From Monocercomonoides exilis PA203 (lineage: Eukaryota > Protista > Preaxostyla): a DNA stretch of 64,000 nucleotides. The stretch lies in the NCBI GenBank assembly GCA_001643675.2, contig LSRY02000049.1, positions 186,001 to 250,000 of the forward strand. The letters are read 5' to 3'. This document shows, in pieces, positions 1,420-26,895 of the stretch; within the stretch, counting starts at the first letter, position 1; each line of letters starts with the position of its first letter. Both the position numbers and the translations under genes were made by a program. Under the pieces are notes generated by a model. It was given only the letters and a program-made list of their open reading frames with translations, did no database searches and was not told the origin of the DNA.

Positions 1420-3429
1420 ATGTTGATTCTTCTTGACACTCCGGCAGGCTTTGGGCTTTACCAAATCGATGACAAAACGCAAATACAACAATTAAATGCT
1501 TCAAATATTAGTTCATTGTATGTAGAAATAAATTACAATTTTTATAACATAAATTTTTAAATGAAGATCAAAATTTGTCGGGTTCACCAAATTTGAGAAT
1601 ATGAACGATGCCCTTAGCGCAGCTACACACATCACAGAAGGTAAGCTGCCTTCACAATTGAAAAAGTTTTTGGAAGTTGAAGTGAAACAACATCATCTTA
1701 CTGGAGATCTTGGAGTTGCAGATCTTAGAATTGGAAGTGCAATAAAAAAGAAACTTGAAATCAACTGCGTTTTTGATAATGACTTGCTAGAGCTTATGAA
1801 GCTACTGAGAGGAGAGTTGGAAAAAGTTGTAAGTTCAGATGATCTGCGCAAAATGTCAATTGGTTTATCCCATTCCCTTTCCAGATTCAAGTTGAAGTTC
1901 TCACCAGAAAAAATTGATGTGATGATTGTGCAAGCTGTTGGTTTGCTTTATTAATCAAATTGCAATGTGGACAAAACTTCAAAATCTTCAAAAAATTGAA
2001 TTTATTTTATTCGCAGGTCTGTTGGACGATATTGATAAAGAAATCAACACATACGCAATGCGTGTTCGGTTTGTGACCGGTTATATATATATAAAAAAAT
2101 TTAAAGCGATTGTCATTATTTTTATTAGTGAATGGTACGGATGGCATTTCCCTGAACTTAGCAAGTTAATAGAAAGCAACATCCAATATGCTCAAACAGT
2201 AAAGAAAATGGGTAGGACAATTCAACAATTTTATTTTTATTTCGAGAAATACTTTCTTTTCGACTTTAATCACAGGTCAAAGATACAATGCCTTGACGAT
2301 GGAATTTGGAGATATTCTTTCAGAAGAAGTTGAAACGAAGATGAAAGAGGCAGCCCATGTGTCCATGGGAGTTGCAGCTAGCGATGATGATATTGCAAAC
2401 ATCAAAGCGTTGTGCGAACAAGTGATTGATCTTTATGCATCTCGTCAACAGTTGGCTGATTATCTTCACAACAGAATGACTGCCATTGCACCAAATCTCA
2501 CTCTCCTTGCAGGGGATCTTGTTGGAGCAAAGCTTATTGCCAATGCAGGAACACTTCTCACACTTGCAAAACATCCTTCTTCTACTGTTCAGATTCTTGG
2601 TGCAGAAAAAGCACTTTTCAGAGCACTGAAGACTGCACACGCCACTCCAAAATATGGTCTTATCTATAGAGGTTTGTACGAAATTGATGAATTTACATGA
2701 TATTCACATCTTATTTCATTTTATTATGAAACATTTCATTTTAATTTTTATTTTCTTTCGAATGAATCACCATTGTCCAAAAATGTGTTCAGCATCTATT
2801 GTTGGAAAGACCTCGGCCAAGAACAAAGGTAAGATGGCACGTGTTCTTGCCAACAAGCTTTCACTTACAGCGCGTGTGGATGCACTCGGAGAAGCACCTG
2901 CATCAGGCGAGACAGGAGTAGACACATCAATTGGACAGCGCTGCCTTGACCAAGTAGAGAGAAGGCAGATGCAGCTTGACGGAATTGCACCTCCTCCCAT
3001 GTTGCCAAAGAAGGGAAACATCGAAAAAGCACCACAATATGTGTATGTTATCACATCTTATATTTTTTCCCACTGTATTAATTTGATTTTAACTATTTTG
3101 GATTCTTGTTCTCATTGAATGCTATCCAATGAAACATTATAAATAGTCCTCAACCATCATACAACACAACAACTGATGCAGTCGTGACTTCATCTGCAGA
3201 TGAAAAAGCAGAAAAAGCAGAAAAAGAAGAAAAGAAAGAAAAGAAAGAAAAGAAGAAGGAAAAGAAAGAAAAAGACGAGGATGAAGACGATATTAAAGCC
3301 GAAAAGAAGAAGAAGAAGCATAAAGATGATGATGAAAAGAAAAAAGATAAAGAAGAAAAGAAGAAGGAGAAAAAAGAAAAGAAGAAGGAAAAGAAGGAAA
3401 AGAAGGAAAAGAAAGAGAAGAAGGAGTAA
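1420..3429 (+). CDS. NOP58: Nucleolar protein 58 (box C/D snoRNP core), 7 exons: 1420-1517, 1567-1940, 2017-2068, 2129-2211, 2276-2671, 2793-3042, 3147-3429
   Basis: Spliced product: [68 protein letters not shown], Nop domain [22 protein letters not shown]...[35 protein letters not shown], and a KKE-repeat tail. All six GT-AG introns are phase compatible. [10 protein letters not shown] and EWYGWHFPE favour NOP58 over NOP56. Confidence 0.93.
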
Positions 3430-3676: not shown

Positions 3677-6600
3677 ATGTCATATGCGCTTAGCAGGTCA
3701 ACAAGAACTCATTCATGCGACAATTGCAGATTAAAGTGTGCAATTTTATTTTTCTTTTAAAATATCAGAAGCTTTTTAATTGTTTCCTTTTATTTAAAAA
3801 GAAAAACGAGATGCGATGGGTTTGTTCATTATTTTAATAAATTTTATTTTAAACATTTCAAAAAACAAAAGAGGATATCCTTGTTCGACATGCAAAGCGA
3901 GGTATTTAGAATGCACATATGACATGCCCGTTAAGAGACGAGGTCCGCGTTCAAGAAGTGTGAATGTATTTTTTTAAATGAAATGTTGAATTAAATGACA
4001 GCTCCTCCAAAACTCTTACAACGATTTTCTCTTGCACCAGCGTTTGAAGGAACGTCTCCTTCTCCAACATCTACAATCGATTCAAATTTTATTACGTCTT
4101 CACTCTTTGGAAATCCTCCGGTTCATTTCCCTCCACCACCTGCACCAAAAGAGGCATCCAAGCCTCCATTACAAGTATCATCAATTCCGTTTGCTCCATC
4201 TTCACTTCTTCAACCATCTTTGCATACTTCAACAATTCAAAAAGAAACATCTTCAACAGAAAAAAATTCTTCACCAAAAATAGAGGCTGGATCCAATTCC
4301 ACATCTTCATATCCTACACAAGTCCCTCCTTTAAAAGCAAATAAATCATCTTCCCAATCTTTTTCGATGCAATGTAAGTCACTAACTTCTTCAGCTATTG
4401 TGGCAACAGAACGATTTTTTGACAATGTTGTGCCATTTTTAAGAATTGGAGAGGAAAAATATGCTTATTTGGAAATATTCCAAAGATATATTAATCCTCA
4501 CTTCTGCTTATTTGGGAAGGATATGACATTTTTTTCACATTTTCCATTTAAAGCAAAAGAGTTATTAATAACATTGAAACGAAAAGAACTAGAACAGAAA
4601 TTTAGGACAGATCAACAAAAAAATCACGGACAGCGGGCAGACTCCAATAAAGGCCATTCTTCAGGACCGCTTTCATTCGCATCAGGACAACTTTCCACTT
4701 CAAGAGTTATTCGGTCCTTCACACGTGTTGAGCATCTGCTGCTGTATTATTGCGATGCTTTGCACATGGAGTTCTACGCTGTGATTGCGCTTGCTGCACA
4801 GCTCGTGGGCCATCAGAACTTGTCTGCCATGTGCATTCGGCAAGCGCGCCTTTACTCGTCCATCCTGCAGGATACAGCAGGCTCTGTAGTTGGCGTTAAA
4901 ATGAGCCTTCCGTTCAGAGTGATGCACACGCTCTCGCACACCGGAAGACTTGGGCAAAGCATCTGGGAGAAGATCCAGCAGATTGACGAGCTCAGCAAAC
5001 AAACGAAAAGAGCTGGAACATCTCCAGAGGGAAAAGCAAATCCTCAGCATTCACAAATATATGCAAATGATCTGAAGAAAGCATCAAAGCTGTCTGTCAC
5101 AACTCTTCTTCCTCCGCCACAGCCACAGACAGATCTTCAGTGTTTGCAATCCGTTTTCCCGCTTCTTCCACCACTGCGCCCAGGAGAACCTGCACCATTT
5201 CTGTTTCCATGTCGAGAGAACACAGAAAAAGGATTGAAAGGTGGAGGAATGGACAACATCTCATCACGGAACTCATCCTCTTCATCGTCTCCACCATATT
5301 CTTCTGATAGCGCTGCAACTTCTCAAAATTCATCGTCTTCTTCGTCTTCATCTTCGTCGTCTTCGTCATCATCATCCTCATCATCTTCGGCTGCTGCTGA
5401 AGACACAGAACTTTCACTCGACCTTTTGGCTTTCAGAGATTTCCTGCGGACTCTCACGATCGATGCAACATGTGCGTGTGCTGTCCCGTTTCGAACGAGT
5501 GAGATTGTCGAAGGCACTTTTGTGCTGGAGTATTTGAAAGGAATCGCTCTGATTTCTTTCTATTTTTACCAGCAAAACGAGCGGCGATCAAAACAGACGC
5601 TGTCTCTTGCATTCGATTTGCTGACATCGGAATATCTGCACAACATCATTTTTACACCATTTCCTCCGTTTCACAACCGAATCGTCCATCCAAACTCCAC
5701 CATCCAACTGGACGGGAGGCATTTCCGACTGTTCCAGTTCTACGAGTACATCAAGAGCTCCTTCAACATTGACCCGCTGAACAAAGCGAAGGAGAATAAA
5801 GAAGAAGCCAATTCGACCTCAAAACTGCAAGAGAGCACAAACACCACTGCCCCGTTCTTGCCTCAAATAAGCTCTCCACCGACGATCCCTCTTCCAAACA
5901 TTCCTGTCATCCAGACATCTGCATCCTACAACAAGATGCTGAAAGAGGCGCCGGCTGCTCCGTCTTCAGCGGAGAAGTGGGAAATGCGCTCAAGCGGTGT
6001 TTCTCCTTCGCTAAAGAGGTTGTTTGCAGTCATGTCGAACGATCCGGCTAACTCGCCCACACTTTTCATTTCTCCATTCGAAATATTCATCCTTGCCTCA
6101 AAGGAGCTGGAGGCATTCCGCTGCAAACAGTGCCACAGCTCAGGCAAGCCAGTCTCTCTGTCGCGCTTCGGGCCGCTTGTGTGGACACCATCAGCACCTC
6201 ACAGCCAGAATATCCTCTCTGCTGTCTCACCTGAAGTCGAAAAGAGCCACGAAAACATCTTCTGGCAAAGAGGCGCCAAGCTGAATCCGTACAAAAGCAT
6301 GTCGTTCTTCAACGACCTGTTTCCGTCGGTGCAGCTTCCGGGACAGAAACACAGAAGAAAGAAATTCTTCACTCAGAGTCAGATGGCCACACCGTCTGCC
6401 TCAAACACGCCGATGCCTGCTTCTTCTCCTGTGCCACCGAGGTTGTACACAGAGGCCACCATCAACATTGAGTCTCTAAATAACTCTAATGCTATTTCGT
6501 GTATTCGCTCATTGGCTGACCATGTGCTGCACCTCAGCCTCACAACGCGCGAGGGAGAGTTCATCCAGCAGGCATTTCTGGACGACTTCAACAGGTTTTC

Positions 6601-9600
6601 CGAGTTGATGAGCTCAGACATCTTCCCTTCTTTGAAGGCTGCTTCTGCTTCGCAGCTGCAGAACGAGCAACAGTCGCCGCTGCAGCAGGATGTTCAGGAA
6701 GAAATGGTCCTTTCACCGTTGTGGAAACCAAGAAGCGTGTTCCAATATTCTTCTTCTTCTTCCTCTTCCTCTTCTTCTTCCTCTTCTTCTTCCTCTTCTT
6801 CTTCCTCTTCTTCTTCCTCTTCTTCCTCCTCTTCCTCTTCCTCTTCTTCTTCCTCCTCCTCCTCTTCTTCTTCTGAACAAAAACAACACCCTGAGAAACT
6901 TCCAGACTTAAAAACTCCGTTAACTTTATCTCCATCTGCTCGATTGCCCAGTCCTCTTTCTCAATCGTCTTCTTCAAATATACTTCATTCTCCTGTTCCA
7001 TCTTATGCACCGCAATCTTCCATTAGAGCAGATGATGGTAAGTCATTCATTTCTTCTTCTTTAATAACAACATCCCAAGCACCAACAAGCACTGCTTCTA
7101 TTTCCACTTCTACTTCAAATTCAACATCAACTTCTTCGTTATCTTCTTCTGGACCCAAACTTATCCCATCTACAAATCCATCAAAGGAGTCTTCTTCCGC
7201 ATCAAAGACTAACGACTCAGTTATGAAGCAAGTGCAGAAAGTGAAGGAGATCTTTTTTTCTTACATCGAACAGAAGCTCAGCTCGCAAAGTACAGCTGGG
7301 AAATCAGCCTTCCGCTCTGCACAGTTGATGTATTATCTTTCCAACTGCATCGATGTGACTCCACAGATGCGCATGATCGATGCTGGACACGTGTTCCATT
7401 TCTTAACATGGGGATTTTTCCCGTACTTGCCAATGGCTGCCAAGCCGTGGATGCGCTTGAAGAGGCCGAAAAAGGAAAAGGCGAATGCAAATGAAACACA
7501 ACAGATGAAAGGGAAATTTTCGACAGAAGAAATCGAAGAAGATTTGACAAACCCATTTGATCAGTTTGGATCGAGCAATATAATTCCTTCAAAGGTGGAA
7601 GAAATAGCACTTCTGAGATCTGTTGCCCACCTCCAGCGGGTTATTCTGCAATGCGGTGGAGCAGAGGCGTTCACTTTAGTATCCATCAACGATCCTATTG
7701 AATCACCCGAAAAAGAGGACAATGGGTCACAACAACAATGCCAACAGACAACCGATTCCGACAAAGAAAGTGCCAAAGCTGCTCAACAAACTGACAAATC
7801 TCAGCTCAATTCAAATGAAGGATCACAGCCGTCTGTTCCGTTCAACATGATTTCAACGACTGCATTGTTCGAAAACGCGATGGATCAAATTCGGAACCCA
7901 GGCAAGCTTCATCCTCAGACAGTGATTGTCGAGAACATACGAGGGACAAGCAGCGAAGAGCCAGTCGAAGATCCTTTGGACGCAAACTCTTACTTGTCAG
8001 ATATCGATTCGCTCTTTTACACAGAGACACCGTTTGAGCATCTCGAAAAGCCGCCTTCTATCGTATTTAACAATGCTATTCCTGATGGATATCAGAAAAC
8101 AGCAGAGATCATCATATTCAAACCAGTGGCATCAGAAAATCAGTATAAAATAGCCACGAGCCAAGTTCCGCTTTCATCGCATTATTTCAAATGCTCCTGC
8201 GGTGCCAAAGTTACAAATGATTGCGGAGTTGACCCTACCTTACTTATTGGACAGTCGAAGGTTTTTAACAGCAAATCTGTATCTCCTGTAAAAGATGAGA
8301 ATGATACATCTTTACTGTCTGAATCAGTGCCAGGTGCAAATCCATCATCTTCATCTTCACCATCATCTTCATCTTCACCATCATCCGCATCAGCATCTGA
8401 ATCAAGCTCCACTTTTGCTGAATCATCTTTTTACACAACATCACAGCCTATAAATTTGACTTCGCTCAAAGCTAAATGGAAACCAACGCCAGCTACTCCT
8501 CGTGAATTCCTTCTTGACATTCTTAAAACTCATACAAATGTTAAAAGTTATGTTACCCCACCTCTTCAATTTTTACAGCACTTGGATATTCTTCTCACAA
8601 ACATTATCAACAGGCAAACTCAGATGTCTGATACAAATGGATATAGCTCCTCAGGAGAGCCTTCAATATTCATGATGCTAATGGAAGGGATAAACCTGAT
8701 TCTTCTCAGAATGCGAAATGACATGCCACCTGAGCCTCCTGTGATGTCCACTCTGCCCACAATGACACCAGCTGCTCTTGTTGGACCATCTGTCAGTCCT
8801 TCTCTAGACATTGGGATTTTGAACTCGATGACGTTCAGCTTGCTTACACTGCCATATGTTGGCCTGCACGCTGCGGCACTAGCCTGCGCAATTCGGAGTA
8901 CACATATAATAATAAGCATCTTCATGGAAAGCAGCGTGTTTCGCTTTTTAACAGGTGGAATGTCATTTTTCATAATTGTACTTCCATCTTTTTTCTTTCA
9001 ACATCTTCTAAGTAGAAGAACAACAAGTAACAAGCACTCTCATTTTCCTCGTTCGAACGAGCAATACTATGGCATTAAAAATGTTTACTTACTCAGAGAG
9101 GCGTATATCTGCTACTTTAAACTTATTCAAGTTATTCATTTCTTTTCACATGACGAAATTCCAAAACAATTGCATCGCCAGCACATCAAATTCTTCAAAA
9201 AACTTTCAATTGATTATGAATACGAGATGATGCACAAGCACGCAATGAAGTTGGAGGAAGATCCATTTCTTGTTCCAGAAAGAAGCGAAGGTCTCTTACT
9301 GAGCGATATTATCACACCAAATTATATTGCAACTGTTCGATTTTACCTTGATCACAATGAACATTACACTTTCATTTCTTCGCATTTCCCAAAGGAACCA
9401 CCATTACACGAACTTATCCGTCGAGGCGACACAGTATCAATTCACACAAGTCGAATGAATGTGTTTGACGAAAATGGCGAAGACGATCGACCTCTTAATG
9501 GAGCATCAACGGACTCCTCTGAAGAGGAATTAACAGAGACGGATACTGTGGGGTTGACTCATTCTCCAAAAGACGAAAGCAAACGCATGCAAGACAAAAG

Positions 9601-10705
9601 CGATTCAGAAGAAGGAGATGAACTAACCGTTGTTTATGGCATGGCAGCTTCATCGCATCCACGATCATCCTTAAAATACTCAGAAACATGCTGCTCAGAT
9701 GATGATGAAACAAGCGAAGACAGATCATCAATCAAGCTAAGCAGCAAGGGGAAGGGAAAAGGAAAAGGAAAAGGAAAAGGAAAAGGGAAAGGTAAAGACA
9801 GAAGCACAGGAAAGAGGAAAGAGAAAGAGAAAGAGCAGTTTAGCGACGACGAAGAAGAAGATTCTGAAGACGAAGATGATTCCAGCACAACTTATGATGA
9901 CGAAGAGGAGGAAGACAAAGAATTAGGAATGAAGATGAAAAGAAAGATGAATCATCATTCAAAGAAAAGGAAAAAATCGCTTCAGCCAAATCAAGTTGAA
10001 ACGTTGCCTTCAACAATTTTACCAGCAGAGAAGAAACCTTTGACCACAGAAGGCGCACCTGCTGATGTATTCGGCAAATCTTCGAGCATTCTGTTTCAGA
10101 ATCACATACCGCCGCACCCACTTTCTGTTAGTCTTCCTATTTTCAAGAGCCAAATTTCACAGCAAACGAACTTCGAGCCTCAGCGTTTTAGTACCAATCC
10201 TTCAGTAATGCCAACACCTTATATAACTCCCACTCAAACAATTCCAACAACTCCTATTCAAACTGTTCCTCCTGCACCAACTGTACCAATTGTACCAACT
10301 GCTTCAGTAGCACCAACAGTTCCAACAACTCCAGCAGCTTCAGCACCTTTCGATTCAATGCAACAGGCACAGCAAAACTACATGATAGATTCAACTTTGC
10401 AGTTTGGTGCGCTTAATTCATCTTCTATAAAGCCAATGTGGATACCAAAAGAAAATTCATTGATGGAAACTCAATCGCCAACTCTTCAATCAATTTACCC
10501 ACCTTTTACACCAAACTTTTACGATTCTTCTTTTGACCCACTTGCAAATCGTTCCGATCTCAATGAATTTGATTCAATGTTTTTGCAGTCATCTTCCAGC
10601 AAATTACCTTCAATTGGACTCGGATCTTTTGACTCTCACATCGCAACAGATCTAATGACAGATGATTTTGCCGATATGCTTAGTTCTTCATTTTTATCTT
10701 ATTGA
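3677..10705 (+). CDS. Zn(II)2Cys6 (GAL4-like) binuclear-cluster transcription factor, ~2288 aa; exons 3677-3735, 3802-3819, 3872-3957, 4002-10705
   Basis: Splicing three GT-AG introns (3736-3801, 3820-3871, 3958-4001) gives MSYALSRSTRTHSCDNCRLKKTRCDGGYPCSTCKARYLECTYDMPVKRRGPRSRTPPK, an exact C-X2-C-X6-C-X5-C-X2-C-X6-C motif plus KRRGP linker, in frame with the 2236-aa ORF. Confidence 0.9.
6749..6874 (+). repeat. (TCT/TCC)n tract encoding ~42 consecutive Ser
   Basis: Directly visible; the longest of many poly-Ser tracts in the window. Confidence 0.9.
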
Positions 10706-10874: not shown

Positions 10875-13800
10875 TCATTGAAGCGGAATGGTAGTTAATT
10901 TTTTCCAGTCATCCACAGCAGATGAGCAAGACAAACGAATTAACTCAATTAAAGATCTTGCAGTTTGCTCGGGATCACATTCGGAAATTTTTGAGATCGT
11001 GTTTTCAAATTCTGATAATCTGTTTTCGCAAACTTTACCCAAAATTTCAATTGTCAATTTATGACATTCTTTAAGTCCTATAAGTATATTTGAAATATCA
11101 GCAAGTCTATCAATACATCTTGCAAATAGCCAGAGGCTTCCATCTTTTGAGCAATGAAGATAAGGGTTCTTTCCGCTTACCTCATCCGCATGTAAAGAAA
11201 GCAATTCAAGCAGAGAGAAAAGATCATTCACACACGTTTCATATGCACGAATTATACATCTTTTCCACGATTTGCTTGAAATGTTTTCTACTGGTCGCAT
11301 GCTGTCGTCAACATCAATGCTTTCCAAGAGAGCACCAACGATAGTTGCACACGCATGACCCTGCACTGATGTGATGAAGGAAGGATGGAAAAACATTGCA
11401 AAGAAGCAATAAAAGGGGGTTGGGCCAAGTGAAGTGGGTTGGATCTTAATCGGGAAGTGAGATTGGTCGCTTGAATTATTATTAAAAAGTAGATTCCTTT
11501 CGGAAAATGAGGGAGAAAGAATATTTGATGATTTGAGTTCTTTTTCAGTCGTTGGCTTTCCTTTACGGCTGAGCATGGCTGAAGGATTCGAGTCAAAATT
11601 CAACGGTTGTGGAAGTGAGGAGAGATTCGTGCATTCATGTACAGAAACATATTGAATTATCATTCTCAAATTTGCGCTTGAAATTAAAGAAGGCGAAGAC
11701 CTTATATAATTGTCATAACGATTGCAAAGAAGGAATGGATAGTCTTTACAAAGATCAGCAAATAAAATTTTCTTTCTGTTTAACACGTGGAGCTCTTTCT
11801 GAAGAGCTATCTGGATTTTATCGCGTTCCTCTGCTTCTTTTACTGTTGAAAAGATGTCTTTCAGAATTTCTCTTTTGTTAAGATCAGAAACAGTTGGAGG
11901 AATAAACTGTGGATGAAGGCAAAAAGCAAAGTAATGTCCACAACATTTGAAAAGCAAGCTGTTCAAAAGTTCTGCATCCTTCGAATCTTTATTAACATTT
12001 TCACTGCTATATTGTAGATATAAAAACAAAACGTGAGAAATTGTTTCCAAATAGCAATTTCCTAATTTCTCTTTGATTGCAGGGTGCCATCTCGGAGAGT
12101 CCATTGCCACAGATAAAGGTGGTGAGAACATGTACTGTTTTTGTGGAACATACAATGCATCAATAAGTCGAGCACTTGGCGTTTTTTTAGATGGTTTGAC
12201 TTTCGCTAACGCAGTTGCAGAAGCAAGCTTTTTAAGATCTTCTTCAACAGTTGGCAATGATAAAAATGATGGGATTACGGAATCATTGAGTGATACAATA
12301 GGTGGTATAACAAGAGAATCGATATCAATATGATTACTTGAACTCTCTGGAACATTGCAAGTGACAGTCAGTGATTCAGTTATTGGACTGATATAATTAT
12401 TATCTTTTGAAGTTGAATTAGCCGAAGAAGAGGATAATGAAGTAGAAGAAGGAGTAGAAGGAGAAGATGAAGAAGAAGAAGAAGAAGAAGAAGCAGAAGA
12501 AGGAACAGAAGAAGACGAGGCAACATCATCAGTTTCAGTTTTTAGTAATTGATGCTCTTCCTCGCCACCATCGCATTGAGGCAATTGATTCTCTGCTTCA
12601 AATCCAGCAAGCAGTGCATCGAAAAGCGCAACTCCAGCATTCAATAACGGAAGCAGAAGCGATAGCACAACGAGTGCAGGCTGGCGAACAAGTAGAGGGA
12701 ATCGTGGCCTGGTTAAGACAAAGAATACGGAAAGGTTTCGAGGTGTTTCGTCATTCAAAGAGAAACCAAATGGATGCCTTTGATCGTCTGAAGTTTGAGT
12801 CGAATTTGACTCCGAATTTGCTGTATCGTTTGCTTGATGTGCATTCTGCGACGATTGGACTGGAGGAGGTTCTTTCAGAGCTGTTTTGAGCACTTTAACC
12901 ATCGTGCTAAATGAATTGACACTTGATTGATATAGAATATTTGCAAGCATTGCAGTTGCCAGAAGCGGAATAAATGCAGAATCATGATCTGAAAAATCTT
13001 CATCCCATGCAACTTTATGAAAGCCTGCTGTCCGCGCTGGAGTGTTGATCTCAACAAGAAGCCATTTGAGAAGGTACGAAGCAATCTCTGTTCTTTCTTT
13101 TTGATCTGGTGAGATTATTAAGAAAGGAGAAAATGGAATCAGCCCCGATATATTTTGATTCTCATGAGCTGGATCAGATTCAACAAGAAGCATCAGTGGA
13201 TTCCAAACCCTGTCTTCTCGGAGAGCCTCACGACTGATAAAGACAGTCATTATCAAATGAAGAGCAGTTTCTCGTCTCAGACTTCTAATATCCCTTCTGA
13301 GGAAGATGGCACACGAACGACGAAGTGCCTGAGAAACTGGAGAGAACGTTCTCAATACACGATAAAACAATGAAGTTGAACGAGGAAAGAATCCATAGAA
13401 TTGCAGGCAGCAATTGAGGCACCATTTGAAATGTTCGGAGCAAAAGACGTTTTCTAATATTCTATCCCGTACTTCTAATCGGTGGGTCGATGAATTTTGC
13501 GGTTGATACATAAGTTCAGATAGGACTGAAGCAAAGAATGAGTATGAATAACGCATGATTTCGTCTTGATAGGAGAGCGCAACAGATGGAGGTGGATTCA
13601 TATGAATGAAAATGCAGAAATTATGGAAGCATTCAATATTCTGTATTTTAACGAAAATATCAACAATGCTTTGCCTCAAATTTTTGTCGGAGGCTTTTCT
13701 TAGAAAGACGTCCAAAAGATGCATCGCTGCAAGAAGAGTAAAATCATAATCGCAACGATTCTCTTCTTTTAATCTGATATTAATCACATTGCATGCTGCT

Positions 13801-16800
13801 GATAGAGCCTTTGCTGCAATACGCACTTCATTAGACGACCGAATAAACCATGAAATCAAATTTATCAGCTGTTCGGGATTGTGAACATCCCTCACAGAAT
13901 TAGTCAATTTTGTTGGATCCAAAAACTCTTTGACTGTGTCATCCTGTTCTTCAACCTGGACATGAGTAAGATGTTCAATATCAGCAAATTTTGCTACAAG
14001 TAATAAAAGTACTTCATGAAAGCGTTCAGGATCAACAGAGTAATACAAAGGCAGAGCAAGATACGATGGAACAACAGTTGATTTATGTGTTCTTCGGAAT
14101 AAGCGATCTTCATTTCTTCCAACTGCGTCGCAATGTCCCTCAAAGAATGTAAATACTGGACGAGATGGATAGAAACATTCTGGAGTGTTGTACTCCCCTC
14201 CTCTGAGTCCATCGTCTGAGAATCCTTCGTATGTATCATACGTGGAATCGGCAAAGTGAGATACTGATGCTTCCCACTCGCAGTTGTAGTAAATAGAATA
14301 TTGTGCTTCAGAAGCTGGCAATTGTGGAATTAATGCAAATGATCCATCATTCGACGATGCCAATACAGATTTTTCAGCGATCTGAGGGATACATTCACCT
14401 TTTCGGCAATGGCAAGAATCTTCGTCTTTAAGACTGTTGGTATTAGCAAGCTGACTGTACATGTTTTGTTTGCTTATTCCAGCTGATGCAAAGCAACCAC
14501 AAGAGCACACTCTGTCTGCAACAATTCTTCGAACCCATCTCAATTCTTGAATTCGAGGAGTTGTTTCAAGAGTAGTTTCTGTGGCCTCAAGAATATGATT
14601 AGTATCGACCTGCTGAGTGTATGACGTATTTGCTGCATCAGTAACTGGCTTGTTGGCTTCATATACTGATTGATCCAATGGGATGGTTGGAGGTATTGCA
14701 GTTGCAGGATGGACAACTGTATGATGCTCAGCAGACGATGATGACATTGACTCTGATGAAGATGACGACACAGCAGATGCAGAAGCACTTGAAGAAGTTG
14801 CATTCTCCATTTTCTCATTGGACATAGAAAAGCCCCAACGCCATTTTGCTTGTTCTGCTCTGAGAACAGCTTTGTTACGGAGTTGTGCAGCCAGCCAATA
14901 TGGCCCAGCTATCAGTTTTTCATCAAAAGACACAAATACTCCCGAAGGTTGAATTGAATCAGCCTCTTCATCGATTTCAATTTCATGTTTCATTTTCCCC
15001 GTTTCCTCATGTGACACAATTGCAAGCATTTCGGAGGATGTGCACTTTTTCTTGCTTTCTTTAATTTGCCACATCTCGTCCCCTTTCTGTTTTAAGACAA
15101 GATCACGGTCCCATTTCTTGCTGAACACAGCGGCATCTTTCAGGTTATCGCTTTCCTTCCAATCTTGCTTCATTCGGCTGATAAATAGTTCGTTACGCTC
15201 TTTAATACGCTGTTTTTCTTCTTCTCCATTTAAGACATCATCCCCAATCACACACATTCGAAGCAACATGGATGCAGCTTCTCTTGTTTTCCATTGTTTC
15301 GCTTCGCACAACACTAACATAATATCTGAGATGCACGAATTGATAATGAAACGTCTCAAAGGAGGGCTAACACGAGCAAATGCAGCAAGAGACGACATCA
15401 CATACATCAGAGGAATTCGAGATTTCTTTCGTTCAAGAGTTTTCTTTAATAAATGTTTAACCAACATCAAAACGTTATTTGGAATTTCAACAAATTCTTT
15501 TGGTTTTAAGGGATATATTGATTCTGTTTCAACATAATATGAAGACGTATTTGAAAGATGGTTAACAGGAAATCTTGAATTATCAAATATGTTGTTGCAG
15601 CTAAGCATCATATTCGGGTGAGAGAACATTGCAATAGCATGCAAAAGCACGTTTAGCCAGCGTGCAAGTTCGTCTCTTAATGATGTTGCGCATAATTGAA
15701 GTGTACATTCCATGAGTTCTAAAAAGAATGTTGCTCCAACATAAGACACAGAATACATTGCTGAAGCTACAACATTGTCTGCCATGCCCTCTTCAACTAA
15801 CCGAGTGAAAAATTTGGTGCATCTAATGGCCATCCAAATGGAACCAAAAATGTTAACCTTTGCACCGCGAATTAGTAATGGAGACACAAAACGCGCGTAG
15901 CAGCAATATGCATTATCAGGATAATATGGTGGGAGAAGTGCAGGAAATGGTGTGTTTTTAATAAAGCTTGGATTAGCACATGGAAGATTCGCAAAGTTCG
16001 GCTGCTGTGGCAGTCGTTCTTTTGGGAATTGATCTTCATTCATGTTTCGCTTGACATATGGCAAAATAGCTGCAATGATTGATTCTGTTGATTCAGAGGA
16101 CAGTTTTTGAGCATTTCCCCAGTCAATTCCATCCCACTCAAAGCATGAGCACATCTCTGACTCTCTCACAGCAGCATCCACTTCAAATCGGAAAGTACGA
16201 CTTAGACGGAAGCGATTCTCTTTTGTTAACGTAATGCCTTTTAACAGTTCGTTCAATTCAAGTTCTTCTTCATCTGTGAGCTTATCATCTGCTTCATCCA
16301 ATTGGGTCTCGCCGTCAGATTCTTGTTCTGTTTTTGCTTCCTTTTCTTTAGCCCTTTTGTTTTTAATTTCATTCATGAATTTTGCTTTTGCCTGCCTTCT
16401 CGCATCATCCAATAAAGCCTTTGAAACTTTGTTGCATCGGGCTTTGCATCTTTCTTTTTCTTCAGCTATCATTCCTTCAACCTCACTGCAAGCACTCAGC
16501 AATGGCAAAGCGAGATACATCGTGTACATGACTGATGTTATAAGCACTTTGATTCCAGCCTTTGATGATGCAGTCGAAACTTGCGGTGCTTTCTTCTTTC
16601 CAAATTGCTCTTCGTCTTTTTCTCGTGCATATTTGTTGTATTCAAATTCGCTATCTTCCTCTCCCACAATAAAATCTGCAATACGTCTCGGATAATCAAG
16701 AGAAAGAAGTAACAACGATGCAAATGTTCCCATTGAAGCGAAATCTCGAAGGATTAGGTACAGTGGAAGCATGGAAGCATATTTTGTTTGACGACACGGA

Positions 16801-19800
16801 AGCAGCGAAAGAAGGGAATAAAGAAGAGATTGGCAGAGTGACAATGATGGAGAGAGAATGAAAGAATTATTATTCAGACACTCATCGATGAGCTGAGAAG
16901 AAGGAAACGGAGGCAATGGAGGAAGATATGGATGCTCTTCCGGTGGATATTCTAATTGTGCCGACGATGAATTAGAGAAAACTGTATATAGTGAAGAAGA
17001 AAACGAAGATTCTGGAGTTAATGCAGATGATGAGGAAGAAGATGACGACGGTCCATTTGAATGTTGCTGCTGCTTTTCGATTTCTTCATCTTCCAAATCT
17101 TTCCAGTCTTCTTCTTGTTGTGATTCTGAGTCGTACGCTTCGTCATAAGATCCTTCAATCGTAAATCCGGATGTTGCTTTCCCTCGGTGCTCCGCTTTTA
17201 TCTGCATCGCTCGCTGTCTGCGAAGCTCAGCTTCTTCCCATGCACCTCTAACAAGCAGAACACGCAGAACAGCCAGAACAAGTTTTGCAAAAGCCATTTT
17301 GGCAACATCATCTGTGCAGTCAACAAGAATAGCTTTAAGCCAAGGTGTTTGCAACTGTGGAGGAGAATATTCCTCTTCATCCGAATCAAAATCCATTGAC
17401 CCAACAGGTGCTGGTGGATTAAGCTGATAGCAGCATTCTGCAGCAAATAGAGAGGCAATGCGTATATCGATTGAAGCAAGCCCTTCAAACTGCCTGATCC
17501 AATAAGCCAGCAGAGGTCGCTCGCTTGAGTGAATGTAAGTATCAAATAAGAAATACATCCACACCCTGATGAAGTCCGTTGATGATGTCAAATGATTCAG
17601 TTCCAACGCATTCGGAGTTGGTAAGCACAAAGATGAGATTGCATGATATGCTAAGGCCACAACCTGCGGACGAGCAGCGAACTGTCGAGCAAATGAAGAA
17701 TGAATCAAGTATGAGTCCATCGTTTCCATTCCTTTTCTGATGTCCAATGGAACAGGGAATAATGTTGAGGATGCGCAAAGTGCTCGAGATGTTATTGGGC
17801 ATACTGATAAGGAGTTCTCGTCTTTAAAAGCAGGGCACTCAACGTTCATGCGATATTTCATCATGTAATCAAATAATGATGCAATCATTCGGAAATGGTT
17901 GTGATTGTAAATATGTGTTTCGTGTGTGAATTCTCTGTTTTCGGACTGAATCTGCTGAAGTGTGCCTATTGGCACATATTTCCTAATTTCCTCTGCTGAA
18001 GGCATTTCCTGTGTCAGCGAGTAAAATGGTATCTTTTGTTCTGGCTCATCTCTTTCCATCGATTCAGATGATTGTGCATCGGATGAAACTTCGTTTTCTT
18101 CTTTTTCATCAAAAGGCAGGATTCTGTCATAAACAAGCAAATATGCTGAATATGGCTTGTCTTCTTCAGCATCAACCCATTTTTTCTGTTTCCAGTCATA
18201 TTTGCGTGTCGTCTGCTTACCTCCAAAGCATTGCTCCTTTAAGCGGAGAGGATCAACTTCCTCAACTGATGAGTCATTGAAGCAGAGCCATCTGTGCGGA
18301 GGGCGTCGTTCACGGATGTATGAATAGTAATGGCCAGATTCAGAAGAACCCGTGTGAACCACAACACCTGCAAGACGATACAAATATCTCTGCGCAGGAG
18401 GAACAGAAGAGTAAGTAACTGTTGCATGGGAAGAAGAAGATGACGATGAGGAAGAGGAAGAGGAAGAGGAAGAGGATGCTGAAGAAGATGATGGTGAAGC
18501 TGCTTTCAATTCTTCAAGTGCCTCTTCAATGGACAGCGGACGAGGCTCCTCCATCAAATCAAGTGGTGTTTTTTTCTGCTGCACCATCTGGAATAGAGAC
18601 TCAATTGTGGTTTCTCTCTCTCTTTCATCAAATGTTTCTGATGTAAACGGTGTCAAATCGAGCACCTCTCCTTCCACTGGAAACTCAAAATAGTCATTCA
18701 CTTTATATTTCAAGAATGTTTCAAAGTTGAACTCAAAACGCTTCAGATGGAATATCAGGGTGTTCGGTAATTTGCCAAGCAGCGTGCGCTTAACGCTCGT
18801 AACAAGTCCGTTGCATTCAGTACATTGGTACTTGTTATCTCCATCAAGCACTTCACCCTGAACAAATAGCTTCAGAGACGAAAATAAGGATCCTTTCGAT
18901 TTAACGTCAACGGGAAGCACGTAGAACGGATCTCTTCTTTCGCTTCTGTGCCCAGCCTCGCAAATAATCTGATTGACAAATTCGCCTTGGAACATGCGCT
19001 TCAGCACATTCTCCTGTTTGTTCGATTTCAGTGTCTTCTCTAAATTATCAAAAAGCTGTCCAAGAAATTCATCTGCATCCATTTGAATGTATATTGACAT
19101 TTTCGTCCCATTTGGATTTCTATAAGCATCACAAAATGGACGCGTTTCTGCTGCTTTGTGAGAATTTTCCTGCATGTTTGCAAACAATGTCTGAAGTTCG
19201 TCCCAAGAAGACTCTGGAATTTCCTCTTGTTCCTCTGTCTCTCCTCTTTCAGCAAGTATCATTTGTTCAACTTCTTTCTCTTGCTTAACTTTTTCGTATG
19301 CTGCATCTTTAAGCGAAAACAGAGATAGTCTGAAAGGATAATGCATATACAATTGTTGCATAAATGATAGCATGTAGCAGATAGTACCAAGGTTATTCAT
19401 TCCAGAATACCCACTCTTTCCTCTCTTCATCTGTGCTGGCCAGTGCCTGAATCCATTCACAGAGCTTCGATGACGCTCTCTCAGCTGTAATCTTCCAAAT
19501 AGCCATCCTGCTCTAAGCGAGCACGGAGGGCATTCATTGCACAGAGAAAGCAAAAGATCCACAGCCGCCATTCGAGTGCCTTCTCGCTTGCATTGTGGCT
19601 CTTCCTGCGAGATTGGTGCTATCTGAAGTGGAAATGATGGAGACTGCTGATTTGTGAGCTTGGCAGGTGATAAAAGTGCAATAGATGAGGATGACAAAGG
19701 AAGAGTCTCCCAAACTGTCTTATTTTGTGCAATGTCCATTTGCAGTGTTTCTGGTGTTGTTATGTTTGTAAGCATGTGGTGGAATATGTGCGAAACAAGG

Positions 19801-22800
19801 TTAAATTCTTGTGAAGTACCCAGAATAGATTTGAGCGACATTGAGCTGCTTTTGGTTGTGCATTCTAAATGTTCTGGAGTTAATTTAGAAGATGAAGAAG
19901 CATTTATGCTCGCCTGGCTTTCGTCCTGATGAAAATCAGACGAAAGTTCAATGATGTTCTTTAGCAGACGTAGCCAGCCAATCAACACATCGTCACTTTG
20001 TGTTGTGAAAGGTGACTCGGATGGATCTCCGTCGAATTCAATTGTTGGCCTATGGACGATGATGGAAGACACCACACTTGCCAGAGACGGAAGATCATGC
20101 ACAAGCGAATATGGCTGAGCAGGAATGACTTGTATCTTGTGTAGTGCCAATACTCCGATGAGTTTTGAGAAAAACGAAAAGAAGTTTTCACAGTTGGATA
20201 GAGGGCTTAGATAATCAAGCTCGTCAGCTGTGTTGATCACACAGTGAAGGAGCTTGGAGCAGACCGGAGACAATGTTTGACTTTCAGTATCTGAAAGAGA
20301 CTTTTGCTCTGCCAGTGTCACAACTTTTGTCAAAAACTTTTCAAAAGAAATGCGCACAGATGCAACTGTCGAGTGGAGAAGAAGAGCAGAAAAGAAGACG
20401 TCAAATGAAGGCGACGATATTTCTTTCAGCATTGAATCTGTTGATTGTTTAGACGAGCACAGAGCAAAAAGAATGGATAAAAGTGATTCAACTCCCTTTG
20501 AGGACTCCACAGCTGTTGGATCAAGTGAAGAGGAGAAAGATTGCTTGCCATCTGACTCCAACATTTTCAAAGGAGGCATTGTTTCTTCTACTAATGAAGT
20601 TATATCTGGAATGCATTGAGTTAACCATAGAAGATTGGCATCTGACTTCTTTCCAGATTCGAAAACAGCTTCTTCTGAAACATAGCACCCGCCAGGACCA
20701 TATCCAAACTGTTCGCCCTGTGAACTGTAGATTGATTTGTGCGAAATCTGTTCTGTGTCCATCTTTCCGATTTGACTTGAATTATCTTTGGAGCTTAGCT
20801 CAATTCTCATCAGACGCGTTTTCTCCAATGCTTTCATAATTACTCCATCTTTTTGCTCTCCCAACATCTTTGACGAGGCTCCTCCTGAAAACTTCCAGCC
20901 AAATTCATTTGCTCCAGTTGAAATAGATGGTAGTAGGTGTTTCGAAGCAAAATACTGAAGATGCTGCGAAGATAAAGAAAACAGAGAAGCCAACGAAAGC
21001 AGTTGGTAGAATAATGATTTAGAAAGAGTTGTTGCCGAATCTTCTTGCAATTCTGCCATTTGATTGAAAATGGTCCGAATATGCTTCTGGGATTGATTAA
21101 CGTTGATTTCATCTTCATTGTCATTTAAGATTATACTTGTTTCTATGTCCATAGCTGAGGTGTTGGATGATAGACTTTCTTTGGCTTCTTCTGATTGTTG
21201 TGATGATGTTGTTGTTTCAGATGAATCGACAATGAATGATGAAATTACTGCCATCAGCTGAGAAAATATAGAAGATCTCAGCGAAGCTGGAGTTGCCTCA
21301 TCTGTAAAGTCTATTGTGAAAAGAAGCGAAAATAGTGTTAAAAGTCCACCAGAAAGACAAAAGTGATCCTTCCATTCAGAAATAGCGTGCTGAATTGAGG
21401 ATTTTCCTTGTTTGTTCTCATCTTCATTGTTTTTCTGTTCGTCTTTTTGGCTTGCAGTGGAGCATGATGACCAATAATTGTTTGATTCATCGAGCATTGA
21501 AAGAACAACCCCAAGTGAATACTCCAACTTGTTGAGAGAAGATGAATCGAACACTTCACGCCATGAAATTATCCTCTGCTGAATAGTCTCCTTTGATAAA
21601 GCCGAAGAAAAAGCATTTGACGATAACAATGACGACGACGACGATGATGATGATTCTCCATAAATAGAAGTTGCTGATTGTTCAGAGTCTCTCATTCGCT
21701 CAGAAGGATTGCAAGTGATGATAGCATCCTGAATAGATTTGTTTGTTGGCGCCTCAGCCAGAAGTGACTTTACCAAGTATGTAATTGAAGGAGATGCACC
21801 CAATGCACTGAACAGAAGTGGATGATGACTGAGGAGCAGCTGAGATGGATACAGATAAGGAGGAATGGCAGAAAATGGATAAGCATAACACACAGGTCGA
21901 AGAAGGGGATCTGCTTCCGTCATTGTAGAGACATTAATTACTGATTCGTCATACAACTTTGAGTTTGCTTCTTCGTCTGTAGCAGTCCCTCCCAGAGTAG
22001 AAAAGGAGAGCGTATAAGCTTTGTGCGGATCACGTAGCATCTCTCTCAAAACAGCTGGCTGTGCAGCAGATTTGAGTACTTCCTTCTCCTTTTCCAGTTG
22101 ATACTCGCTTCCCTTGTTCTCTGCCCCAATGCTTCGAATGTGCTGCTTCAGCGCAACATCCAGCTTTGGCTCTTGCTTCTTTGCAAGTGATAAAAGTGAG
22201 CTTTTGTCCTGTGTGTAATCAGCCATTCCGTTGTACAGCCAGACATCGCTAATTTGTTTCATTGCTTTCCAGTTCGGTCTGCTGATAAAGTTCCGCATGT
22301 TTTCTGCTTCTTCTATTTCTGCCTCCATCATTCCAGGTTCATGCACCGTTATTTCTCCATCCATCGCTTCGAGTCCCTGCCCCAGCATCGCATCGAGCTG
22401 GCTGCGCGTAATTGCTCCAGTTTTCTCAGCGTACAGTATTCGAAGAAGCTGCGGACATGCTTTCTCTGTTGTTGTGATTGCCGTCTTGACATCGCCAGTG
22501 GCACCAGCTTCCAATGTTACTTCCACTTTCATCATTGGGCCGTGCCTTTGGTGAGAGCGGGCACGAGAGCATCTGATGAGCGGATGCACTTGCATGTCAA
22601 ACTGGTCGATCATCTCTTTGATGATGAGAAGGGCATTTTCTGCTCGTATGTACAAGAGCTGCGATATCTCCTCTGCATCACGCTGCTTCTTATTTATCGC
22701 ATCGACAAGATTCTTCACTTCTCTCATAGCCTTGTTGAGGCAGGCATTTATTGCCTCCTCAAACTGGATGAGTGCAATTGTTTCGTCGCACATCTCTTCT

Positions 22801-25800
22801 TCACTCATCGCTCGCTCGCTCTGAAGCATCTGTGACTGTGGCGACTGAATAAACTTTGTCAGCTCCGGAAACGCATTCGGAGCAAATGACTGCATCAAGC
22901 AGGAACGGGCGTTGGATCCGATATTTGCATAATGTGCAGGAGAAGAGAAAGAAGAGGACGAAGATGAGGAAGACGATTTTGATGACTTAGATGTGCGAGC
23001 AGTCTTCTGCTTGTTGAGCGTCTGAAGCTCTGCTTCGATGTTGCGCGAAGAACCGTTCATCAGAGCTATTTCCCAGATCGTCTCGTCTGCCACTCGAAGC
23101 GCTTCTTCAATCGCTTTCAGGTTTTGCTTTGTCTGCTCACAGTTTTCAGCATATGAAAGCACAGATAATTTGTTCTTTTCAATAAGTCTCCGTTTATTTT
23201 CTAGAGCTTTCTCTTGTTGCTCGTTTTGTTCCTGTTCTTCTTTCTCAAATGAAGCTGAGATCTCTTTGAAGACTTCCTCAAACTGTGCATCATCTGCTTC
23301 TTCAGAACTTTCCCCTTCACTTGTTTTCTCCTCACGAGCCTGCTTTAGCATTGCCTCCAGCTCCATTTGTTTTTCTTCGTGTCTCTTTCGTTTCTCTTCC
23401 TCAAATTCCTTTTCTTCGACTTTGAGCTCTTCCTCTGCTGACTTTATCTTCGCGTTAATCCTCGCAATGCCATCTGTCCATCTGTTGATTCTGATTGAGT
23501 GCTTTGTCTTAGCAATCGATGCTTGTGTCAAGATTGACTTAAACAGATTGAATTCTGTTGCCGAAAGGCTTCCTTTGTCCATCGTGTGGCACATCTGAAT
23601 GAAGAATGGAATGAACACCTTGGGAAACATGTTGTCGTATTGCAGAACCAACTTCTGAAATTCGGGTGTCGGCTGCACATGCGGCGGAGTCTGCGGAGGA
23701 GTGATAAGCTTCCGTATCAAGTCAACGCCTTGCTCTTTCTCGTCAGCTGTCTGCGCGTCGAGTGTCATCGTGCTCCACACTCGGTCGAGCATCTCCTGTG
23801 TGAGCGGCTGCCGCGACGTCTGAAGAATCTTCAGCAAAAACAGAGCAAGCGAGGACGTGTGCTCAGAGTAAGTGAAGGAGCCTATCTGAGCCGAATCGAT
23901 CTTTAAGCCAGATGTTGCTAAAGACAAAGATGAGCCTATTGAGCTCAAGGAATGCAAAGAAGAAGAGGAATCTGTCAGCATATTCGCTTTGGAGTTCGCC
24001 ATTTTGTTCATCTTCATCATCTCATGCAGCTCTTCAACTTCTGATAGAACAAGCTCAGCAATGTTGTGTTGCATTTGCAGATACGTGAAATACTCTCTTT
24101 CGCTCATCATGTGATTGTCTTGTGTCAATAAAGACCTGTTCTTTTCTTCCTGTTCTTTCTCTTTGAGCAAACGCTGTTTCTTCTCTTCAGTTGTCTCATT
24201 GTCGTGTGCTCCTTTCTTTTCCTGCTGCTGCAATTGTTCTGTTATGATCGCATTTTGTAGGATTCGAATGCTCTGAACAACAGAGTTGTGGCAGTGAAGC
24301 AGCGCAACACAAATCGGGATGAAGTGCTCACGATGAGCCAGAGGAAGCATTGAGACAAGCGGAATGAGATGGAGCAGCGCCTCCTGGAGAACAGGAGGAG
24401 TGCAAGAAAAAGCAGACAAGAAAGGAAATTGTGTGTGGCGTACGAGTGATGGAGAAAATATGAGGTATTGAGGAGTGGTAAAAGAGAAGCTTGACAATGA
24501 CGAGGATGAGGAAGAGGATGAGGAAGAGGAGGAAGAAGAAGAAGACGCAGATGCAGATTCATCTGAAGCGGAAGATGTAGAAGCTGCACAGAAACTAATG
24601 CAAAGCTCTGACAGTTTCTTCACTTCTTCTTCACTTATTTTCTTTTTCTCTTCTTCGCTAAGCGGATCAAGAACGACAGAAAGGAAGAAATCCAATCCTT
24701 TTTCAGAAAGCTGTGGGAATGAGCGAATTATGGATTGCTCCACAATTCCTCTAAGAAGGCGAATAGAATGGACATCGCTGATGAGAATATTGGAAGCATC
24801 TGCTTGTTGAAGAGAAATAGAAGAGGAGCTTGGCAATGATGGCAAGGACGAAGATGAAGAAGGTAAAAAAGAAGATGATGATGATGCGAATTGTTTTTGC
24901 TTTCTTGAATGGAGCTTGGATGTTGTGTTGACGCAAATCGAGTTCACAATCATGTCAAACAGAACTGTCAGATCGCCTTCAGAGCAGACTTTTATCAAAT
25001 CCATGAAAAAGGCATTCATTTCCTTTTCCTCGCTTTCGTGTTTTCCTCTTGCCGCCTTCCACAGAATGCTCAGTACTTGCTCGCCAAGTCCGCCTTTCAG
25101 TTGGCACAACCGCAGCGGCAGCGCAAACGCCCTCTTTGCGACTTCCATGTGCATTCTCTCTCCAAATATTGCTTCGATCACATGATACTCCGCCAGCATT
25201 GCAAGGAAGGTTCGCGGACGCATTGCTGATGCGCACACAATTGAACGTGATTCAATGACACTTCGAGGCAAACGAGGAGTAACAGTCTTCAATGGATCAC
25301 TTTCAATCTTCGCAATCAAAGCAAGTGCATCTTTTATTTTACTGTCGAGCAGAAGTTGTTGTGCATCTCGATTGTTATTTCCTCCTTCAACGTGCTGTTG
25401 GTTTCTGTTAAGTGCTTCTTCTCTTTCTGCTTCTAATTTTGCTTTCAATTCTTTAGCTTGCCTTAATTGGCTCTTTCGCTCCATAATTTCAGCCCTTCTT
25501 TCTCTCACCTCCTTCTCTCTTGCTTCGTCTTCGTCTTCCACCGACTGTGACACAGTCGATGATTGCGACTTGCAAAATGACTCAACAAACTGAATGGCAG
25601 CTGCAATACGCTTTTCCAGCGACGAAGCGCTCATCTGGCGCACGCAGATGTGGAACAGGAGCTCCTCCATCGCTTCCTTCACATTTCGCTTTCTGCCTTT
25701 CCCCAACGGAAGAGCAGCGGAATCGCTTATTTGTGCTATGCGAATAAGCACAGACTCTATCGAGTTCAATATGCGAAAAGCAGATTTCTTTTCAGATGGG

Positions 25801-26895
25801 GGCATCATTGTGTCGTAATTGATACCTTCTGCAAGAAAATATGCTAACTCAACAAACAGTGACTGGAATGGCAGAAGTGAATTAGCTGTGAATATGTTGG
25901 ATGCCCTCTCAAATGGCCGTATTAAGTACTTCAGCCTGTTTAGAGATGCATCGGATTTGAATTGGTAATGGTGTTCAGACAAGAATATTGATGATTTTTC
26001 ATTTTGTGAAGTTATAGATGACGATGATGATTCACTTGCGCTATCTTGTTCTGTTTCAATACGATGTGCTTGAAGCTCTTGCTCTATTACATCTGACAAC
26101 AACTGAAATCCTTGATAGTCAACTAAAACGCTCAGCATGGACAATGGGTATGCTGGCAGTCCTTCCATATTCAGATCATCATCAACATATTGACTGATAA
26201 TCTCGTCGATTTCAGGTAAGTTGTGTGAGTCAAATTCGTAGCTTTGCCAATAAGAATTAACTTTGCAACTGAACAAAACTCCTATGGCATGGGCAAGAGC
26301 ATCAGAATGTTCAAACTGATTTAATGATCGAACCAAAAAGATAACAATATCTTTGGTATAGCACATTATACTCTCCCAGCATCCTCTTGAAAATGTTCTG
26401 TTAAATAAAAATAAAAAGGTTAAAATGCAATTTGCTTTTAAAATTCAACAAAAATATTTTGAGTTAACAGACGCAAAAGATTTTATCACTCTAAATATTC
26501 TAATAACTGATTGAAATAGTTGTTCATTAATCTCTTGCATGCGAAGAGCTTCATCTAATTCATCAAGTGCAGTGCAATAAGCTGAAAGAGTAATAACACT
26601 GTTTTTTATTTCGGATTCTACGTGAAATAGGATTTCAAAAGATGATATTAATTATTTTTCATCAAATAAAGAAGAAAAAAAGAAAAATAAAGAAATTTAA
26701 AGGAAATGCAGAATGTGTTAATCTCAACCTCGAATTGAAGATCGCCGTAAATCAATGCTACGAAGCGAATTATTTAATTCTTTTTCACTTGTAAATATCT
26801 CCAAAAATTCTAATAATTCCTCGAATATTGATTATAATAAAATATAAAATTTGCACGCCTTCCTTTTTCTTGGAGAAATAGTCCTCTTCACTCAT
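10875..26895 (-). CDS. Giant ubiquitin C-terminal hydrolase (peptidase C19, USP9X/USP24/USP34-like), ~5250 aa; exons 26895-26857, 26819-26729, 26581-26473, 26397-10875
   Basis: Cys box GYSGMNNLGTICYMLSFMQQLY (~19345-19410), QMDADEF, LDGDNKYQCTEC, LPNTLIFHLKRFEFNFETFLKYKVNDYFEFP, His box YRLAGVVVHTGSSESGHYYSYIRER..WLCFNDSSV (~18270-18385) and SAYLLVYDR. Three small upstream exons join in phase to the 5163-aa ORF; the 5' model is less certain than the domain call. Confidence 0.9.

Follow-up and report, generated by a model that had tools for sequence, protein, structure and literature searches.

Background

Zinc binuclear cluster (Zn2Cys6) proteins have been documented outside the fungi, with counts of 71 in Naegleria gruberi, 24 in Ectocarpus, 22 in Acanthamoeba and 3 in Dictyostelium, and the question of whether these non-fungal clusters are ancient or transferred is explicitly open (PMC5611559, PMC4053784, PMC5415576). 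Those of Naegleria are described as having varied, non-fungal architectures. A micro-exon inside a Zn2Cys6 coding region has also been described: in Xlr2 of Trichoderma virens it encodes PCRRCE, and RNA sequencing showed that it is included only at low glucose (PMC11121469). In the present study, we analyzed a stretch of 64,000 nucleotides from Monocercomonoides exilis PA203 (GenBank assembly GCA_001643675.2, contig LSRY02000049.1, positions 186,001 to 250,000 of the forward strand), hereafter the window, to which positions refer unless another sequence is named. It contains a four-exon gene for a giant protein headed by a GAL4-type zinc binuclear cluster, in which the third cysteine is supplied by an exon of only 18 nucleotides (nt), and this gene is one of eight giant zinc-cluster paralogues of the oxymonad. 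We put the probability of this reading of the gene, in which the likeliest role of its product is sequence-specific regulation of transcription, at roughly 0.8.

Gene structure and zinc-cluster domain

Translation exon by exon joined three mini-exons in phase with an open reading frame (ORF) of 2236 codons (3995-10705) on the plus strand. The whole gene occupies 3677-10705 (plus strand) in four exons, with a coding sequence of 6864 nt, or 2288 codons, arranged as follows.

3677..3735, plus strand: exon 1, 59 nt; start codon, Cys1 and Cys2; reads ..SCDNCRL, then AA from a Lys codon; phase 2 at its end
3736..3801, plus strand: intron 1, 66 nt, GTGTGC...AG, G+C content 0.20; gives a stop if retained
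3802..3819, plus strand: exon 2 (the micro-exon), 18 nt; A finishing the Lys codon, then KTRCD with Cys3, then GG opening a Gly codon
3820..3871, plus strand: intron 2, 52 nt, GTTTGT...AG, G+C content 0.13
3872..3957, plus strand: exon 3, 86 nt; completes the Gly codon and carries Cys4 to Cys6 and the basic tail ..CTYDMPVKRRGPRSR
3958..4001, plus strand: intron 3, 44 nt, GTGTGA...AG; the sole donor and acceptor pair that enters the long frame
4002..10705, plus strand: exon 4; all that remains of the 2288-codon protein, stop included; rich in Ser (16.5%), which forms long runs

The ATG at 3677 is the first one past the in-frame stops upstream. Exon 3 reads A, then GYPCSTCKARYLECTY..KRRGPRSR, then A, and contains ..YPCSTC......C.Y and the KRRGP tail. 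All three introns are bounded by GT and AG with GTNTGN donors, and have a G+C content of 0.13-0.23, against 0.39-0.45 in the exons; a value of 27.6% has been given for introns in the Oxford Nanopore Technologies assembly of M. exilis PA203 (PMC8767320). A preliminary description of this DNA had proposed three short GT-AG introns joining exons of 59, 18 and 86 nt in phase with the 2236-residue ORF, and had read them as a Zn(II)2Cys6 domain split across three exons with the third Cys in the micro-exon. The coordinates were borne out by the exon-wise translation, and both the cysteine spacing and the phases agree with the split domain.

The six cysteines of the spliced product follow the spacing C-X2-C-X6-C-X5-C-X2-C-X6-C, which fits the general pattern of the Zn_clus domain (C-X2-C-X6-C-X5-12-C-X2-C-X6-8-C), with Cys3 in the micro-exon. 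Between Cys2 and Cys3 stand the residues RLKK, identical to those of the Gal4 chain in structure 1d66; basic residues at this place contact DNA in the Gal4-DNA structure. Exon 3 alone matches Pfam Zn_clus (PF00172) with 19.3 bits at profile positions 18-38, the gathering cut-off being 21 bits, and in one of the paralogues exon 3 alone is above that cut-off (22.4 bits). Exon 1 alone gave no Zn_clus match in Pfam, and a phmmer search of the PDB with exon 3 alone found nothing. Judged by its sequence, the giant ORF is thus headed by a GAL4-type Zn2Cys6 domain. The likeness to Gal4 lies in the six cysteines (C-X2-C-X6-C-X5/6-C-X2-C-X6-C), the N-terminal placement, an identical CRLKK and the 'C.Y' after Cys6. 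Unlike Gal4, however, the coding region of the domain is cut by two introns with an 18-nt exon between them, the protein is about 2.6 times as long, and the host is a metamonad.

The paralogue family

The M. exilis genome searched comprises 82,301,135 bases in 101 contigs. A six-frame scan with PF00172 found seven places, six of which match the second half of the domain only, and this suggests a shared intron. The seventh place (C7:272374-272448 in our contig numbering, 18.9 bits) has stops on both sides and neither a micro-exon nor a giant ORF, and was set aside as probably a chance match. A degenerate pattern of the micro-exon with its AG and GT flanks occurs at exactly eight places in the 82 Mb, on contigs C8, C10, C11, C23, C24, C28, C36 and C46, while the reversed pattern, used as a control, has no occurrence in the same sequence. 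All eight places, including two beyond the first six loci, show an ATG-CxxC exon, the micro-exon and a PCxxC..C exon, and the end of exon 1 is identical in layout across all of them. At six loci the layout consists of a short exon 1 from the ATG to CxxCR.+2 nt, an intron of 49-73 nt, an 18-nt exon encoding K-[IT]-[KR]-C-[DN], an intron of 49-112 nt and an exon encoding PCxxC......CTY..P.KKRGP. The five loci other than that of the window gene that were read further downstream each continue into an open frame of more than 2000 codons (2283 to over 3184).

Averaged over pairs of loci, nucleotide identity reaches 0.86 in the micro-exon, 0.70 in the last part of exon 1 and 0.60 in exon 3, but only 0.38-0.41 in the adjoining intron sequence. 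A chance motif, against which eight conserved copies argue, was ruled out on that ground. The window gene is therefore a member of a family of eight giant zinc-cluster paralogues.

Relatives in other oxymonads

An exhaustive HMMER search of 1.84 billion representative proteins with a profile of seven paralogues returned no fungal protein and only 22 matches in all (E<=0.001). The named matches all belong to M. exilis, Blattamonas nauphoetae or Streblomastix strix, and the rest are short unnamed metagenomic fragments. A word-index protein search with the first conserved part of the body (block A, see below) found one paralogue only.

The Streblomastix protein EZS28_006260 (UniProt A0A5J4WT38) has a complete zinc cluster followed by block A. 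Its cluster scores 76.5 bits on Zn_clus, its best solved structure is that of GAL4 (1d66, E 6e-8), and exon 3 of the window gene is 60% identical to this domain. In the Streblomastix DNA, intron 1 lies at the same codon position, whereas intron 2 is absent and the sequences corresponding to the micro-exon and exon 3 are contiguous. Because these two form one exon in Streblomastix, the join of exon 2 to exon 3 in M. exilis appears to have been read correctly. Within this zinc cluster (SNRW01001006.1, 1501-1720 of our locus L015), the deposited protein has Gln at a TAA codon, consistent with a non-standard genetic code in this oxymonad. The EZS28_006260 model (556 residues) matches the start of block A twice (101-201 and 368-465) and has two Pfam Zn_clus stretches; it may fuse two tandem genes of the family or hold a mis-assembly.

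Blattamonas shares the position of intron 1. At the locus of BLNAU_19003 (JARBJD010000238.1, 1592-1609 of our locus L014), an 18-nt exon encoding K-I-K-C-S is flanked by AG and GT and has the phase seen in M. exilis. The deposited model (A0ABQ9X309) passes straight from exon 1 to exon 3, so that it is without Cys3, and scores 13.3 bits on Zn_clus. The Streblomastix and Blattamonas members combine Zn2Cys6 and block A as the window gene does, but both are much shorter; in UniProt, EZS28_006260 and BLNAU_19003 are automatically labelled 'Zn(2)-C6 fungal-type domain-containing protein'.

The host, an oxymonad, is a flagellate of the Metamonada that lacks mitochondria, not a zoosporic fungus. That the gene belongs to a non-fungal flagellated protist, as first suggested from the DNA, is upheld by the MONOS_, BLNAU_ and Streblomastix names of its relatives. 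Fungal contamination was excluded by the megabase contigs, the short AT-rich introns of host type and the occurrence of the family in three oxymonad genera.

Existing gene models

Three M. exilis models of this family were found among the deposited proteins, and in all three the cluster is incomplete or absent: the first residue of MONOS_13268 is a Met within exon 3, and MONOS_7235 and MONOS_12918 start further downstream, without the cluster. For the window gene and four other paralogues (contigs C10, C11, C23, C24 and C46), no block A protein is present in either of the two protein libraries searched, while those of the three remaining paralogues are present; the five may be unannotated or mis-split. 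The expectation that ORF callers would easily miss the domain has thus held for these three truncated models, as well as for BLNAU_19003, which skips a micro-exon present in the DNA. In the oxymonad protein sets inspected, the domain is missing or truncated because the 18-nt exon defeats gene callers.

The body of the protein

BLASTP comparison of the paralogues showed that their bodies share four blocks, corresponding to ORF residues 139-341, 479-613, 1102-1241 and 1483-1827. The features of the body encoded by exon 4 are as follows.

4409..5833, plus strand: block A, ORF residues 139-613, helical, with two low-complexity inserts; candidate regulatory domain resembling that of Upc2/Cep3
7298..7717, plus strand: block B, ORF residues 1102-1241; conserved in the paralogue BLASTP
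8441..9475, plus strand: block C, ORF residues 1483-1827; also common to Blattamonas proteins
9815..9940, plus strand: most acidic stretch, 55% Asp+Glu over 40 residues
10649..10702, plus strand: acidic-hydrophobic motif at the C-terminus, ..DDFADMLSSSFLSY; paralogues and Blattamonas relatives end in it as well; it may serve in activation or docking

Between the conserved blocks lie unbroken runs of Ser, from about 20 to more than 50 residues long, and inserts of this kind occur at corresponding places in the paralogues.

For ORF residues 130-620, AlphaFold2 with an alignment of 23 rows gave an all-helical model, with a mean predicted local distance difference test (pLDDT) score of 68.9 and 263 residues at 70 or higher; the Ser-rich inserts are disordered. 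An exhaustive fold search with VIA-align over 48,161 chains placed the following chains near the top (rmsd, root-mean-square deviation).

Rank 1: 4n9n_B, Saccharomyces cerevisiae Upc2, Z 9.9, rmsd 2.8, 118 aligned
Rank 2: 6f07_A, Cep3 in CBF3, Z 9.8, rmsd 3.8, 147 aligned
Rank 4: 7vpr_A, Candida glabrata Upc2, Z 9.3, rmsd 3.6, 124 aligned
Rank 7: 6p7v_B, Kluyveromyces lactis Cep3, Z 8.6, rmsd 3.9, 136 aligned

With a model of the compact homologue from Blattamonas (pLDDT 75.6), these four chains again took ranks 1, 2, 4 and 7, with Z 8.3-9.6. Upc2 and Cep3 are fungal proteins that themselves start with a Zn2Cys6 cluster, and the matched chains are their regulatory domains. It is unlikely to be an accident that these two top the list for a protein headed by Zn2Cys6. 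The likeness is that of an all-helical domain downstream of a Zn2Cys6 cluster, as a predicted fold with Z 8.6-9.9. The differences are that there is no detectable sequence similarity, that only about 115-150 residues align and that block A is broken by long Ser-rich inserts.

Two neighbouring reading frames adjoin the gene. An ORF rich in Lys and Glu (3184-3429, plus strand) stops 247 nt before the start codon, and an ORF of 5163 codons (10875-26366, minus strand) ends 170 nt past the stop codon.

Discussion

We propose that exons 1 to 3 would be constitutively spliced to give an N-terminal Zn2Cys6 DNA-binding domain with a basic KRRGP tail, to which the last exon would add a Pro/Ser-rich linker, a helical body, an acidic stretch and the conserved acidic-hydrophobic C-terminal motif. 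The zinc cluster would read CGG-like half-sites, the helical body may dimerise, sense a signal or do both, and the acidic tail may recruit co-activators. The first conserved block of the body probably adopts the regulatory (middle-homology or ligand-binding) fold of Upc2 and Cep3.

Several observations weigh against this proposal. The exon junctions and the start at 3677 are placed by comparative evidence alone. Exon 3 by itself falls 1.7 bits short of the Zn_clus cut-off. No coiled-coil dimerisation element, which many but not all members of the class have after the cluster, is obvious by eye (no predictor was run), and the roughly 90 residues after the cluster appear, again by eye, to be Pro/Ser-rich. 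As for the body, Pfam gave no relevant match to the 2236-residue ORF or to seven family members; Fungal_trans (PF04082) in particular had no match at E<=1 on the ORF, nor at E<=10 on the seven members, and a scan of the whole genome found it absent from the eight loci. A sequence search of the PDB with a block A profile returned chance-level matches only. Foldseek found no match in the PDB for either the block A model or that of the Blattamonas homologue, and a shape search of the ESM-Atlas found none for the body. Furthermore, Z scores of 9-10 are below the level of about 13 at which VIA-align trusts helical matches, and the two models were built on one shared alignment and hence are not independent. 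Finally, Cep3 is a kinetochore protein and not a transcription factor. Because of the low Z scores, the single shared alignment and the want of a link at the sequence level, we rate the Upc2/Cep3-like regulatory fold of block A as probable only. As a separate observation, the sole Fungal_trans signal in the genome (C49:209379-209504, minus strand, 16.2 bits) does not reach the cut-off and is not at a locus of the zinc-cluster family.

Other explanations of the locus were weighed against a zinc-cluster regulator. One is that the protein is made from the ATG at 3995 only, the mini-exons being a decayed and non-functional remnant or 5' untranslated region. This ATG does open the long ORF, and the three deposited M. 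exilis models also begin without the full cluster. However, it falls inside intron 3 of the spliced model, and the protein that it would start has no exact match in the protein collection. Moreover, in eight paralogues and two other genera all six Cys codons are intact, as are the phases and splice sites, whereas the introns have diverged to background, and we consider such a short-start protein scarcely credible. It is improbable, too, that the protein binds DNA through the zinc cluster but is no gene-specific transcription factor, and instead has a structural part in chromatin or at the centromere, as Cep3 has in the CBF3 complex of yeast, or is a large scaffold whose cluster serves to bind another ligand. 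The place of Cep3 among the best fold matches would suit such a role, as would the unusual size of 2288 residues and the conserved helical blocks far from the DNA-binding domain; a feature search of the ESM-Atlas likewise gave helical repeats of the FAT and TPR types, which are weak leads only (scores below 0.9, low recognition). On the other hand, the transcription factor Upc2 matches no less well than Cep3, eight diverged paralogues suit a family of regulators better than a single structural component, and both the acidic stretch and the conserved C-terminus, acidic and hydrophobic, look like activation domains.

A further possibility concerns the micro-exon itself, which might be alternatively skipped to give an isoform that has lost Cys3 and also the Lys aligned with Lys18 of Gal4. 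Such an isoform would be unable to bind DNA, and so would be inactive or dominant-negative. Since the exon is 18 nt long, skipping keeps the frame, and it does so in all eight paralogues; the BLNAU_19003 model, which lacks the micro-exon, loses the Pfam match. The micro-exon of Xlr2 (PMC11121469) offers a precedent, as it also lies within a Zn2Cys6 coding region and carries zinc ligands, although it encodes two Cys whereas that of M. exilis carries Cys3. However, BLNAU_19003, the sole skipped version seen, is a gene model from genome annotation and not shown as a transcript. In Streblomastix, which is without the second intron, there is no separate micro-exon to skip and the switch would be unusable. 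Coding constraint on the domain suffices to account both for the length of 18 nt and for its conservation. Furthermore, short AT-rich introns such as these (44-112 nt) suggest splicing by intron definition, under which exon skipping is rare. A splice switch is thus quite improbable in our view; the family nevertheless provides eight genes in which to ask whether a micro-exon within a zinc cluster can act in this way.

With regard to the origin of the family, literature searches on zinc clusters in Monocercomonoides, oxymonads and Metamonada returned no relevant paper. The preliminary description had presented the gene as a taxonomic surprise. The host is indeed non-fungal, but the surprise was overstated and is moderate only, given that clusters are documented in Naegleria, Ectocarpus, Acanthamoeba and Dictyostelium and that relatives of the gene already bear a UniProt label. 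As in those protists, a canonical Zn2Cys6 domain is found far from the fungi, and the same question of ancient origin or transfer arises. Unlike the proteins of Naegleria, the oxymonad body may keep a fungal-type regulatory fold, and the lineage is a different one (Metamonada: Oxymonadida). A body without detectable similarity to fungal sequences and an intron common to three oxymonad genera argue against a recent transfer from fungi. One possible explanation is that the combination of Zn2Cys6 and a regulatory domain of the Upc2/Cep3 type was kept by vertical descent, predates the split of Metamonada from the fungal lineage, and was lost many times elsewhere; at present we regard this as unlikely. 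If it were true, the two-part design would not be a fungal invention spread by transfer.

Conclusions

The oxymonad family is a modest extension of a class of regulators already known outside fungi, and brings no new mechanism. With it, Metamonada join the patchily distributed holders of a domain that is still routinely called fungal. There is also a hint that cluster and regulatory domain travel together, a point of relevance to the question of ancient or transferred origin (PMC5415576, PMC5611559). For annotation, a whole class of putative DNA-binding regulators is missing or truncated in the oxymonad protein sets inspected. Since the domain is missed by gene callers, the transcription factor catalogues of these amitochondriate model eukaryotes would be short by at least eight genes.

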